Numbered from the stretch's first letter, positions 7,824-25,731 are shown. The stretch is DNA of 35,116 bases from Octopus bimaculoides (GCF_001194135.2 NC_069001.1:682661-717776), one strand, 5' to 3'. Translations and numbers: made by a program. The notes: generated from the sequence alone by a model not told the origin.

Positions 7824-8155
7824 TCACAAAATAATATTTACAAAATGAAATAGCGAGGAGTCTTTTATTCTGCAAATATATTGTCCCACATTATTTGGTG
7901 TGAAATGAGAGATATGCAGACGGATACCAGTGACATTGGAAGCAATACTTTCTGGGATACTTTCAGGTGTCGGAATGCTGTCATTTGGTGGCACCCATTC
8001 TAAGTCTTTTGTTTCGTACAGGTTGTGCGAACAGCCAAGTTGCAGTCGGTCTCCTGCGTTGATCACAACACTTCCATTTGCAGTAACTACATATCTTGTT
8101 CTCTCATCACTCCATGTTGTTGTAATGTTGATGTAGATTCTTGGTGGCGCTGATT
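7824..8155 (-). CDS. Terminal exon: Ig-like domain
   Basis: tttctttatttaccag acceptor, phase 1; PPRIYINI...[11 protein letters not shown]...LEW...[18 protein letters not shown]...FVNIIL* shows Ig B-strand Cys, C-strand Trp and GxYxC. Confidence 0.9.
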
Positions 8156-8206
8156 CTGGTAAATAAAGAAATTATCTTGGTGATTGATTGATTGATTGAT
8201 TAATTG

Positions 8207-8239
<33 letters not shown>

Positions 8240-8911
8240 GGTGGTGGTGGTGGTGTAGGTGGTGATGGCGATGGTAATGGCGGTGGTTTAACCCCCAGGC
8301 TTAATCTCATCCAGCAAGCCTACTACCATCAAAGATGTTGCATCTACAACTCTCCCAAAATTTTGTATATTTATAACTACAATGTCCAGTGTAATTTCAT
8401 TTCTGAAGAAGAAACAAAATGCTAAAGCCATCAACACACCAGAGCCAGAGAGCATCCATACTTTGGAAGATAAAGAATACTGGAGCAACATTCCAATTTA
8501 AACAGGAACCTGATGTAAACGCAACAGACCAGATATGTTTGTATGGCACAGTGAGCAAAAGCTGCCTGGCAGACGTGAATGTCTCTTTAACAACCAGGGA
8601 AAAGGAAACCATTTGTAGAGAACTCATGAGAAACCTACAGCCATTATATATATATATATATNNNNNNNNNNNNNNNNNNNNNNNNNNNNNNNNNNNNNNN
8701 NNNNNNNNNNNNNNNNNNNNNNNNNNNNNNNNNNNNNNNNNNNNNNNNNNNNNNNNNNNNNNNNNNNNNNNNNNNNNNTATAACAATACATAAAAACGGG
8801 CTAGAGTTGAAGTGCTCAGCATGAGCTAGAATTCAAATTATAGTAAGAATGGATACATAAGGGTAGAAGACCACAGGAACAATACCGTATATCCAACGCA
8901 AGATTTAATAT

Positions 8912-8952
<41 letters not shown>

Positions 8953-23953: not shown

Positions 23954-24023
<70 letters not shown>

Positions 24024-24763
24024 CATATATATATACATAAAAGATGTACTCACTCTTTGACAGACGATTACTAATGTATTGTTTTTTTGTTTTTTTTCAG
24101 ATGAAATGCTGCTAAGCATTTCTCCCAGAATGCTAACGATTCTGCCTGTTCACCGCCTAATAATAATAATAATAGTAATAATAACAATAATAATAATGCT
24201 GATAAAACTAATAACCCCATACAAGATAACAACAGCTGCTTATTTGTTGTGGAAGAAAAATTAGCTTACAATAAGTCTGCTGCTTAAATTATTTTGGTTT
24301 CAGATTTTCCATATCAAATGAATTTTCTCATTAATTACTTTGTCACACAATATACAGAAGTTTTATTTTGAAAATAAATATTTAGTTAGCTTTGACGAGA
24401 CATCCAGAAGTTGATGACACTTGCCATAACATCAGCACAAAAATTGGAATGAATTCCTCTGATGGTGGCAGGACAGTTCTAAGAGATTAAATCAACTTTA
24501 AAATATATTTACTGTAAATTTTTGACTGTTGTGCTTAGAGATTGCATTTGCAAAGTGTGTGTGTGTGTGGGGGGGGGGGTTTAGCTGGTCAATTACTTTC
24601 ATATCCTGAAAATCCTCAAATCTCCAAGGTTATCACTTAGATATTTAGTAATGTGGCAAAGTGTATTAATAATTGCTGTCCATACCAGCAACGGACAACA
24701 GATATTAAATGATGATGATGATGATGTATGCATGTATGTATGCTGTGTGTGTTCAGTTAGATG

Positions 24764-24823
<60 letters not shown>

Positions 24824-25731
24824 AACAGTATAAGTTAGAGCTCCACATAAGTCTTTATTATCCAGTTAGCATACAGTGATAGTGGTTAGTCTATCACTGA
24901 ACTTGACAATATTAATAGTTACGATATACAGAACACACAAGCATAAATTATTAGTTCCTACGTATAGTTCACTGCTGGAGTTATTTGGAATTCAGCATTG
25001 GGTGTCCCAAGTGCATTCGGATGCATAAGTGCCATGGGTCACCAAGGAAACACTTTTATTGCATTCTGTTATTGAGATTTAAAATATGAAATCAATCCGA
25101 TGATGAGATAATTTATGATTATTTTGGAACTGAAGTTGAAAGAAAGCAAATGGAGTGGGGAATGTCAATATAGATGTGTGTGAGTGTGTATCTGTGTGTA
25201 CTTCTTTGTCTTGACATTGGGTGGTAGTTGTAAATGAGTGTCATTGTCATACAAGCGGTGTCATGTGTATGAAATCATGTTTGGTCATGGAGAAATATTA
25301 CCTTACTTAGAAACAGGTGAGGTTAGGCACAGGAAGGGTGTCCAGTTTTAGAAAATCTGCCTCAGCAAATTCTGCCTGACCTGTGCAAGCATGAAAAGGT
25401 ACACCTATGCACATGTGTGTGCATGCAGAAGGAGTGGGGAGGGTGTATGCATGTGTGTGCACGTGTATATCTCTGCACATGTGTATATGCGTGTGCAAAT
25501 CTGTGTTTCTCTATGTGTGTGTATGCATAAGTGTACACTTTACAGGTAACTTACTTGGTCTACATTTAGGAATAAATGGAATCCATTTATCCTGAAGACA
25601 TATAACGTTGGTGATATTGTCTGCTGGTTCATGGGTTCCTTCATTACATGCAATAGTCATCTCCTCAATTCCTTCAACAACATCCACAGATACCGTCATA
25701 TATTTGCTGTTTCTTAACTTCCGACAGCCAA
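7824..25731 (-). CDS. Multi-exon gene: 8 sushi/CCP domains plus C-terminal Ig-like domain (Hikaru genki/Hasp/LEV-9-like extracellular protein, 5' end unresolved, ~650 aa visible)
   Basis: Exons 25555-25731, 23707-23904, 23355-23546, 21349-21540, 19131-19325, 18220-18405, 17711-17737, (13936-13947), 12869-13072, 12281-12535 and 7824-8155 all have AG/GT ends. Internal exons are multiples of 3 and phase 1-1, and no junction creates a stop. Each large internal exon has the 4-Cys CCP pattern. Many NxS/T sequons and no transmembrane segment in the confident exons. Confidence 0.85.
8290..8645 (+). mobile_element. RLE-type (R4/Dong-like) non-LTR retrotransposon fragment
   Basis: [28 protein letters not shown] resembles the W..I.T....NRPD endonuclease motif; stops present. 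Confidence 0.5.
9250..9420 (+). mobile_element. Mariner transposase 3' remnant
   Basis: [24 protein letters not shown] resembles the mariner C-terminus (F.KL..R..KCI...G.YFE). Confidence 0.5.
11343..11475. repeat. 9-bp minisatellite (tatggttac/tatggttgc)
   Basis: Direct tandem units visible. Confidence 0.9.
11615..12190 (-). mobile_element. Three stacked copies of tRNA-type SINE family 1 separated by (TAA)n
   Basis: Element sense reads ggcgagctggcagaatcgttagca (A box)...gagttcaaattcc (B box)...gtgcctatagtagaaaggatt(att)n. Confidence 0.8.
12281..12535 (-). CDS. CCP exon 8 with Pro/Lys linker
   Basis: 255 nt; [13 protein letters not shown]...[42 protein letters not shown]. Confidence 0.93.
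12869..13072 (-). CDS. CCP exon 7
   Basis: 204 nt, gtaagt donor; [13 protein letters not shown]...ISCKLNS...[17 protein letters not shown]. Confidence 0.9.
13385..13735 (-). mobile_element. Two stacked SINE family 1 copies
   Basis: Same sequence as 11615-12190, with a (TAA)n spacer. Confidence 0.8.
13936..13947 (-). CDS. Possible 12-nt micro-exon (DSIS)
   Basis: gattttctttcag acceptor, cag|gtatgg donor, phase 1-1; this short a match could be chance. Confidence 0.3.
14010..14175 (+). mobile_element. tRNA-type SINE family 2 head (also 14793-14955 +, 22590-22750 -, 30835-31140 +; 3' parts at 10340-10415, 11515-11600, 30225-30275 -)
   Basis: Repeated ggc(g/a)tgg..tgtggtaagaagcttgcttcccaaccacatggtt..aggttcagtc...gaccaaagccttgtgagtggatttggtagacggaaactgaaagaagcc. 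Confidence 0.8.
14345..14520. repeat. Compound trinucleotide microsatellite (GGA)n(GAA)n(GAT)n
   Basis: Directly visible. Similar simple repeats occur throughout: (TA)n, (CA)n, (TAA)n, (ACT)n, (CAC/CAT)n at 17830-18180 and a CAA-rich tract at 21725-21920. Confidence 0.95.
17711..17737 (-). CDS. 27-nt linker micro-exon (GIADFDGLP)
   Basis: gtttcttatttgtattacag acceptor, G|gtatgt donor, phase 1-1, in frame. Confidence 0.6.
18220..18405 (-). CDS. CCP exon 6
   Basis: 186 nt, gttagt donor; SCVLPEFKE...[12 protein letters not shown]...[16 protein letters not shown]. Confidence 0.92.
18490..18860 (-). mobile_element. Mariner transposase C-terminal remnant
   Basis: [35 protein letters not shown]...[23 protein letters not shown] carries the mariner PHPPYSPD motif; stops and a frameshift present. 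Confidence 0.85.
19131..19325 (-). CDS. CCP exon 5
   Basis: 195 nt; SCLQLKNDS...ELHCNPQ...[16 protein letters not shown]. Confidence 0.9.
19375..20000. mobile_element. Cluster of SINE family 1: two minus copies and one plus copy (19862-20000)
   Basis: Sequence match to the other copies; the plus copy starts ggcagggagctggcagaatcgttagca. Confidence 0.8.
20590..20850 (+). mobile_element. CR1/L2/Jockey-type LINE 3' remnant
   Basis: LVPSSPC...[34 protein letters not shown] resembles the SFFPRT..LWN.LP..F...DL..FK tail. Confidence 0.5.
21349..21540 (-). CDS. CCP exon 4
   Basis: 192 nt, gtgagt donor; [10 protein letters not shown]...[37 protein letters not shown]. Confidence 0.93.
21925..22450 (+). 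mobile_element. Penelope-like element, GIY-YIG endonuclease remnant
   Basis: KYIG/frameshift/[15 protein letters not shown]...TSLAIWK...[14 protein letters not shown]...NIFNSRMEV matches the PLE YIG..FK.R..NH..SF / C.LC..E / LN.R.E pattern. Confidence 0.75.
22927..23300 (+). mobile_element. Near full-length SINE family 2 copy
   Basis: Head, internal (TG)n and 3' part ending ..ggcaatgctccagtatgaccacaatccaatgactgaaacaag. Confidence 0.75.
23355..23546 (-). CDS. CCP exon 3
   Basis: 192 nt; [11 protein letters not shown]...VICENGF...[16 protein letters not shown]. Confidence 0.93.
23707..23904 (-). CDS. CCP exon 2
   Basis: 198 nt, gtaagt donor; [10 protein letters not shown]...[14 protein letters not shown]...[17 protein letters not shown] (conserved Trp replaced by Phe). 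Confidence 0.92.
25555..25731 (-). CDS. CCP exon 1 of main gene
   Basis: Long polypyrimidine tract plus ctag; gtaagt donor; 177 nt; [11 protein letters not shown]...IACNEG...[17 protein letters not shown]. Confidence 0.9.

Follow-up and report, generated by a model that had tools for sequence, protein, structure and literature searches.

An octopus CCP gene that ends in a CCP-Ig module of the Hikaru genki type

A ten-exon gene for divergent CCP modules and one Ig domain

The sequence analysed in this study, referred to below as the window, is a stretch of 35,116 nucleotides (nt) from Octopus bimaculoides (GCF_001194135.2 NC_069001.1:682661-717776), and all coordinates are counted from its start. 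The window is AT-rich, loaded with microsatellites and interrupted by five assembly gaps. By stop-to-stop six-frame translation combined with splice-site analysis, a gene was delineated on the minus strand that extends from position 25731, the first exon base directly after a polypyrimidine-AG acceptor, to position 7824, the last base of a TGA stop codon. An earlier note, made from the sequence alone, had described this interval as encoding a fast-evolving sushi protein, related to Hikaru genki (Hig), Hasp and LEV-9, that stops at its Ig domain. The two end coordinates given there, without a strand, were exact, and the peptide strings quoted, including PPRIYI, are present in the translation, as are the Ig domain, the stop codon and the AATAAA. 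However, the span contains nine CCP exons instead of the eight modules that had been counted.

The gene model comprises ten exons, nine for CCP modules and one for the Ig domain, so that there is one exon per domain (Table 1). All of them are of phase 1-1 with AG/GT splice sites, and their lengths are divisible by three except for the last one. The assignment of the nine exons to the CCP (sushi) type follows from the presence of four cysteines with CCP-like spacing in each of them (a CCP having about 60 residues with 1-3/2-4 cysteine pairing), the consensus tryptophan in eight of the nine (the remaining one having F), and the phase-1 single-exon organization. The codon that is split between the CCP9 and Ig exons (G/AA) encodes Glu. 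When spliced, the ten exons yield a product that is 100% identical to XP_052831410.1, a protein of 709 residues with the RefSeq name "SVEP1-like"; it contains 16 N-x-S/T sequons and, with the upstream extension discussed below, 38 cysteines. The gene has thus already been predicted in RefSeq, where it and its relatives carry generic names, and it is uncharacterised.

Table 1. Features of the window and their positions, with the ten exons of the gene listed first in the direction of transcription.
Feature	Position	Strand	Remarks
CCP1 exon	25731-25555	-	acceptor ttgtatgtcttctag, donor gtaagt; ends KCRP; internal phase-1 exon
CCP2 exon	23904-23707	-	F replaces consensus Trp (KYGEF); Pfam Sushi 16.2 bits, sub-threshold
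CCP3 exon	23546-23355	-	Pfam Sushi 24.0 bits, above gathering score
CCP4 exon	21540-21349	-	Pfam Sushi 26.6 bits
CCP5 exon	20413-20183	-	long, 76 residues; four Cys and W, no Pfam match
CCP6 exon	19325-19131	-	four Cys and W, no Pfam match
CCP7 exon	18405-18220	-	four Cys and W, no Pfam match
CCP8 exon	13072-12869	-	Pfam Sushi 20.8 bits
Linker and CCP9 exon	12535-12281	-	CCP half of the Hig-type module; aligns with Hig CCP1
Ig exon (SAPPRIYI...) with TGA stop	8155-7824; stop 7826-7824	-	Pfam ig 27.2 bits, exon alone
AATAAA	7819-7814	-	5 nt past the stop
Assembly gap	8662-8778		within the CCP9-to-Ig intron
Counterpart of O. vulgaris-type low-complexity C-terminus	10003-10092	-	
Last two CCP exons of upstream neighbour XP_014767620.1	33609-33409; 32475-32285	-	second exon includes the stop
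Canonical CCP (CTDPGTPENGH...)	4944-5111; open frame 4875-5129	+	Pfam Sushi 44 bits
Further assembly gaps	743-1110; 7007-7217; 29948-29971; 33971-34171		all adjoin microsatellites or low-complexity runs

The CCP modules deviate strongly from the consensus, as had been proposed. With the whole protein, the Pfam Sushi score amounts to 65 bits, and for comparison the upstream neighbour gene reaches 241 bits over 11 stretches. When the CCPs were scanned singly, three of the nine (CCP3, CCP4 and CCP8) passed the gathering score, CCP2 and CCP9 remained sub-threshold, and CCP1, 5, 6 and 7 went undetected. The single W-to-F change reported in the earlier note is also real. It resides in CCP2, where F is found in O. 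bimaculoides, O. sinensis and the decapodiform-like sequence described below, and L in Argonauta. The score of the Ig exon lies above the Pfam ig cut-off of 21.8 bits, and the C...Y.C hallmark of the B-F disulphide is present. Sushi and Ig were the only families detected in a Pfam scan of the gene product, which returned no VWA, EGF, pentraxin, HYR or CUB domain. A mariner-like remnant had been suspected at positions 18590-19050, for which Pfam gave no support.

Orthologues of the gene were found in O. sinensis (XP_029648920.2, "complement factor H-like", 94% identity), O. vulgaris (CAI9738440.1) and Argonauta hians (GAB1606856.1, 62-64% identity). The gene is part of a cluster of three CCP genes, the synteny of which is conserved among O. 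bimaculoides, O. sinensis, O. vulgaris and Argonauta. The ratio of nonsynonymous to synonymous substitutions (dN/dS, Nei-Gojobori) was 0.23 in the comparison with O. sinensis (dS of 0.11) and about 0.1 in the comparison with Argonauta, for which dS is saturated. These values of 0.1 to 0.23 indicate that the gene is under purifying selection. The notion of a fast-evolving protein accordingly has to be qualified: the CCPs are strongly divergent in sequence, but the substitution ratios speak for constraint.

In addition, sequences with about 40% identity are present in public read assemblies (P0120, P0131 and P0132; contigs L003-L008) and occur in the runs SRR7369732, SRR8281663/68/72/77 and SRR9970013. 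They represent partly spliced transcripts of this gene, apparently from a decapodiform cephalopod. They encode CCP1-7, CCP8, an extra CCP, CCP9 and the Ig domain, followed by a stop and, about 20 nt further on, an AATAAA, and they keep a short intron after CCP7 (L003 1-2289; L008). One isoform, P0132, skips CCP5. Since all exons are of phase 1-1, the number of CCPs may vary by alternative splicing. Altogether, the gene is real, constrained, and transcribed in a relative.

One of the five assembly gaps falls within the 4.1-kb intron that separates the CCP9 exon (donor at 12281) from the Ig exon (acceptor at 8155), where it is flanked by a TA microsatellite at a distance of 507 nt from the closest coding base. 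On either side of this gap, the intron is collinear with that of O. sinensis. In O. sinensis and Argonauta hians, the orthologous introns (7348 and 1327 nt, respectively) are free of N and devoid of any open reading frame (ORF) resembling a CCP or an Ig domain, and the models for both species join ...QKTEED/E.APPRIYI at the same codon as the window. In view of these gap-free introns and the identical CCP9-Ig junction, the continuity and the reading frame across the gap are unaffected.

The stop codon is located three residues past strand G of the Ig domain, and it has this same place in the window, in O. sinensis, in Argonauta and in the decapodiform-like transcripts, the cephalopod proteins ending for example in FHFVDIIIS. 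No CCP-like ORF was found on the minus strand across the 7.8 kb beyond the stop, up to the end of the window. Because the stop position is kept in all these sequences, it represents a feature of the lineage and not a truncation caused by assembly or annotation. The protein does end after the Ig domain where Hig continues into a CCP, and the conservation of this stop across coleoids is a new finding. The AATAAA is a plausible, though unproven, polyadenylation signal: the AT-rich strand contains the hexamer at a frequency of 1.5 per kb, and at the matching site O. sinensis has AATAAC, with a canonical copy about 55 nt downstream. The O. vulgaris model CAI9738440.1 exits CCP9 in the middle of the exon, behind GIWY, and its C-terminus (VVLAVAV.FDIVVA...) is encoded by low-complexity sequence of the intron, with the consequence that the Ig domain is missing. 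This loss is probably an annotation artefact, the other possibility being an alternative 3' end.

The terminal CCP-Ig module and its relation to Hig

To place the last two domains, a profile (A1) of CCP9 and the Ig domain was derived from three octopod sequences and used in an exhaustive HMMER search of 1.84 billion representative proteins. The ranking by whole-protein E-values was headed by proteins with many CCP repeats, such as a coral CR1-like protein. Since summed CCP repeats dominate such E-values, all matches were re-scored by their single aligned stretch. Among stretches that covered the two domains or extended across the linker, the best ones outside cephalopods then belonged to an unnamed fragment (P0075, 36.1 bits), Daphnia Hikaru genki (33.7 bits, spanning both domains), Penaeus Hikaru genki-like (31.7 bits), Strigamia Hikaru genki (31.3 bits), protein P0039, which we read as a WAP domain with CCPs and two such modules (30.6 bits), a Megaselia "hig family protein" cluster (28.6 bits), P0040 (27.5 bits), Gordionus proteins (about 26 bits) and Pollicipes Hikaru genki-like (25.9 bits). 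In the alignment with Hig, the module consists of an atypical CCP of the type RC..G.F.L.GS..L.C.NG.W...P.C, a linker PP.I, and an Ig domain of the type G..V..PG..L.L.C ... Y.C. CCP9-Ig and Hig CCP1-Ig are collinear over the two domains with matching spacing, and the identity within the module amounts to 22-25%.

The reciprocal comparison employed a hidden Markov model (HMM) built only from the CCP1-Ig modules of five arthropod Hig proteins. This HMM produced one match in the octopus protein, with 58.3 bits at residues 535-696, the other CCPs of this protein scoring at most 18 bits. At most 23 bits were reached by individual CCPs from the neighbour gene and from the generic multi-CCP proteins that were tested, and the values for carriers of the module were 52-58 bits for the cephalopod modules, 110 for Gordionus, 75 and 61 for P0039, and 73 for Strigamia P0042. 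These sequence comparisons support the view that CCP9-Ig is a Hig-type module homologous to the arthropod Hig CCP1-Ig, with a scope that is limited to the last two domains. The Hig junction proposed in the earlier note was thereby recovered with both the profile search and the reciprocal match, and the recognition of the module in this novel terminal position is new. By contrast, the broader designation as Hig/Hasp/LEV-9-like needs to be narrowed. It is justified with respect to Hig for CCP9-Ig, but the eight upstream CCPs are unlike Hig, and Hasp and LEV-9 are characterised by a WAP domain, which was not found here, and have no Ig domain in their described make-up.

The module was also modelled with AlphaFold, which places CCP9 and the Ig domain in one confident unit (pLDDT 87.9, pTM 0.81). 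A Foldseek search of the PDB with this model retrieved Ig domains only, namely antibody V domains, VEGFR-3 D1-2 and IL1RAPL1 (E-values above 0.001), and no solved CCP-Ig tandem. The full-length model, computed with six sequences, was of mediocre quality (pLDDT 63): CCP1-7 appear as beta-rich modules with pLDDT values of about 60-90, and CCP8 is poorly predicted (below 45). At most, this model hints at a beta-rich modular build.

The protein might also be a generic sushi protein of the SVEP1, CSMD or factor H kind, the likeness to Hig reflecting only the universal CCP and Ig folds. Such a view would be in line with the RefSeq names "SVEP1-like" and "complement factor H-like", with the location of the gene in a cluster of three CCP genes, and with the coral CR1-like and other multi-repeat proteins that top the whole-sequence E-values by repeat addition. 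However, named Hig proteins are among the very best single-stretch matches, the HMM built from Hig alone separates the module (58 bits) from the single CCPs of the generic proteins tested, the gene product has none of the accessory domains sought with Pfam, and factor H lacks an Ig domain. We therefore regard a merely generic sushi protein as very unlikely.

Conversely, the gene could be the cephalopod orthologue of Hig itself, having lost CCP2-5 and gained N-terminal CCPs. The type of the module would fit this idea, and no molluscan protein with a CCP-Ig-4xCCP arrangement was seen among the matches with a named source, many matches being unnamed. Yet the architecture differs on either side of the module, and the module also occurs in architectures other than that of Hig, such as those of P0040 with its 16 CCPs, P0039 and a Gordionus protein of 1,410 residues. 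Moreover, the 52-58 bits of the cephalopod modules remain below the scores of Gordionus, P0039 and Strigamia P0042. Orthology to Hig thus appears unlikely. Since the module is also found in long CCP arrays of other phyla, it is either mobile or ancient, and it does not define orthology. The cephalopod gene may be a truncated Hig paralogue, a remodelled orthologue or a product of domain shuffling. A search of the literature on Hig in molluscs, including cephalopods, gave no relevant result.

The incomplete 5' end and the neighbouring CCP genes

In the RefSeq and Argonauta models, translation begins at a Met within CCP1, downstream of the first cysteine of this module, and a signal peptide is absent. 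The annotated models accordingly contain an odd number of cysteines (37), which becomes 38 when the sequence upstream of this Met is included. Both the AG acceptor and the in-frame upstream stretch are kept, the latter reading GCQKLRNSKY in O. sinensis, GCNKLRNSKY in Argonauta and GCKALQNSKD in the decapodiform-like sequence. This conservation upstream of the Met (GC.KL.NSK) spans four lineages and includes synonymous changes, whereas the upstream intron is not conserved. Because CCP1 is encoded by an internal phase-1 exon and its first cysteine precedes the annotated Met, at least one upstream coding exon must exist, which presumably carries the signal peptide. Every gene model that we have seen lacks the true N-terminus, as is shown here for the first time. 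The missing 5' part may come from unannotated sequence or from the neighbour gene described below, the product of which has 878 residues.

An N-terminal exon in the O. vulgaris model (MIEAVKMQ...) was rejected as the true start, since it could be mapped to O. sinensis alone and has no counterpart in the window; it lies in a long ORF that we take to be a retroelement remnant. Two further observations were made close to CCP1. Firstly, the remnant of a retroelement ORF, with a sub-threshold zf-RVT match (21.9 bits), is located at 26036-26359 on the minus strand, in sense orientation and about 300 nt upstream of the exon that starts at 25731. Secondly, a Met at about 25680 (minus strand), two or three residues before the second cysteine of CCP1, is kept in octopus, Argonauta (PEMSISC) and the decapodiform-like sequence (KRMTVIC), in which its counterpart is the start chosen by the ORF caller. 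The conservation of this Met may be a coincidence, or it may mark an internal start site. The assembly gap at 29948-29971 belongs to the stretch that might harbour the missing 5' exon.

Lastly, the state of the 5' end raises the question whether the gene could be decaying or non-functional, with a transposon-derived start and no signal peptide. In this respect it is relevant that all models lack a signal peptide, that the sole upstream exon in any model is the O. vulgaris exon within the presumed retroelement ORF, and that a decapodiform-like contig keeps 1.6 kb of unspliced upstream sequence. On the other hand, the ten exons are intact in every species examined, all 38 cysteine positions are kept, the dN/dS values are low, and conservation extends to the splice acceptor and to the coding sequence before the Met. 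Decay of the gene is therefore highly improbable.

The upstream neighbour, XP_014767620.1, is encoded on the same strand and consists of 878 residues with a signal peptide and about 13 fairly canonical CCPs. Its five-residue tail past the last CCP cysteine (CDCGS-stop) is kept in Argonauta through four synonymous changes, and this odd tail with its extra cysteine is therefore under selection. On the other side, the canonical CCP on the plus strand (Table 1) is the last CCP of a convergent downstream CCP gene that encodes about 775 residues and is conserved in O. sinensis and Argonauta.

The upstream neighbour and the gene studied here could constitute one transcription unit whose 3' ends are alternative. 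In a long isoform, the terminal exon 32475-32285 would then be skipped or left through an internal donor, the exon starting at 25731 being joined instead; the product, about 1,550-1,600 residues in length, would comprise a signal peptide, about 22-23 CCPs and the terminal Ig domain. This idea is attractive since the two genes lie on the same strand at a distance of 6.5 kb with their adjacency kept in Argonauta, since the upstream gene has the signal peptide that the downstream gene lacks, and since no independent signal-peptide exon was found between them. Furthermore, all exons are of phase 1, and joining 33609-33409 to 25731 gives the reading ...SCEK-I-GCRKL..., which is a normal four-residue inter-CCP linker. 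However, the conserved DCGS-stop tail implies a real C-terminus for at least one isoform, and the in-exon donors that would bypass it either destroy the last cysteine or are unconserved (GT in octopus, GC in Argonauta). The NCBI and O. vulgaris annotations keep two separate genes, more than 10 kb separates the two in O. sinensis, and a fused protein was not found in the databases. On balance, we consider a single transcription unit possible but rather unlikely.

Proposed role and comparison with known systems

Taken together, it is likely that the window contains a genuine coleoid gene for at least nine divergent CCPs, the last of which forms a Hig-type pair with a terminal Ig domain, that the start of this gene is missing from the models, and that its product would serve as a scaffold. 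It should be noted that several observations weigh against this interpretation. With the cephalopod profile, the scores of the Hig proteins (26-34 bits) exceed those of the best CCP-only matches by little, and the case for Hig follows from the collinearity over two domains and the reciprocal match of 58 bits. The homology of the module says nothing on orthology to Hig, and the annotation pipelines label the whole protein SVEP1-like or CFH-like. Furthermore, a scan of the 6.5-kb upstream intergenic region for a signal-peptide exon gave only microsatellite artefacts, and in blastn and tblastx comparisons of the upstream region with Argonauta and O. sinensis only known exons and repeats were conserved. 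Secretion of the protein is thus an assumption, the signal peptide not having been found.

CCP proteins such as Hig, Hasp and LEV-9 serve in flies and worms as organisers of neurotransmitter receptors at the synaptic cleft, and Hig is expressed in the CNS and located in the matrix of cholinergic synaptic clefts. By analogy, the product of the octopus gene might be a secreted, glycosylated and rod-like extracellular scaffold, in which the predicted rigid CCP-Ig end and the chain of CCPs would bind partner proteins. Such binding could take place as for Hig in the cholinergic synaptic-cleft matrix, or as for CCP proteins in immune recognition. In insects, Hig has in fact both synaptic and antiviral roles (PMC9083331, PMC7180231).

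An extended version of this proposal is that coleoids have rebuilt a Hig-type synaptic matrix system, in which a cephalopod-specific scaffold, possibly made jointly with the neighbour gene and then having about 23 CCPs plus the Ig domain, would organise receptors at (cholinergic) brain synapses with the CCP-Ig pair as its docking end. The large brains of cephalopods evolved independently, and to our knowledge no comparable CCP synaptic organiser has been described for them; even so, we regard this version as doubtful. If the protein has an immune or epithelial function instead, it would be an ordinary lineage-specific sushi protein. The gene is a concrete candidate for study in octopus brain, haemocytes and skin. 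Neither the database names (SVEP1-like, factor H-like) nor the start codons of any of the available models can be relied on.

With Hig, the cephalopod protein shares the CCP-Ig module, composed of an atypical CCP, a short PP.I linker and the Ig domain. Hig has been described as CCP1 - IG - C-terminal CCPs (PMC7180231) and as containing five CCPs and one Ig domain (PMC9083331). In Hig, the Ig domain leads without a spacer into four canonical CCPs, beginning with the C-P of the first of them, whereas the cephalopod protein ends at this point. In addition, Hig has a signal peptide and then a long non-CCP region (about 380 residues in Megaselia) before CCP1, in place of which the cephalopod protein has eight or more CCPs.

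Hasp and LEV-9 are likewise chains of CCPs, of which there are nine here, and the known ones are secreted with a role as matrix scaffolds. Both consist of a WAP domain followed by CCPs, up to 17 in Hasp and 8 in LEV-9, with no Ig domain described (PMC9083331). The N-terminal WAP domain is what defines them, whereas the cephalopod protein ends in an Ig domain; Pfam returned no WAP match for the gene model, for P0001 and for the upstream neighbour (P0012), within the limit that the model of the gene itself is N-terminally incomplete.

Multiple CCPs are also common to SVEP1 and factor H. SVEP1 carries VWA, EGF, pentraxin and HYR domains besides its CCPs, and by Pfam these are absent from the gene model. 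Factor H, which lacks an Ig domain, is made up of 20 canonical CCPs, compared with three of nine that pass the Pfam threshold singly here. Judged by its domain content, the cephalopod gene thus misses features by which Hig, Hasp/LEV-9, SVEP1 and factor H are defined, and yet it bears a Hig-type module. We do not count it as a member of the Hig, Hasp or LEV-9 families, given that its Ig domain is not followed by CCPs and that the available model contains no WAP domain.

The nearest overall architecture appears, from the predicted sequences, to be that of long CCP-array proteins in which the module is included, all of which are uncharacterised predictions. The Hig-type module lies within long CCP arrays in P0040 (1,483 residues, 16 CCPs), Gordionus XP_065315974.1 (1,410 residues), Strigamia T1J865 (two modules), P0039 (two modules) and sea-urchin XP_011680487.1. 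P0039, a protein of 751 residues from a read assembly, combines CCPs and its two modules with an N-terminal Cys motif that looks WAP-like by eye, for which Pfam gave no WAP match; if this reading is true, the hallmark of Hasp and LEV-9 and that of Hig occur in one chain. Unlike the cephalopod protein, P0040 and the proteins of Gordionus, Varroa and sea urchin as well as the named Hig proteins continue from the Ig domain immediately with a further CCP. In coleoids, the Hig CCP-Ig module is present in another architecture, namely at the C-terminal end of a long chain of divergent CCPs.

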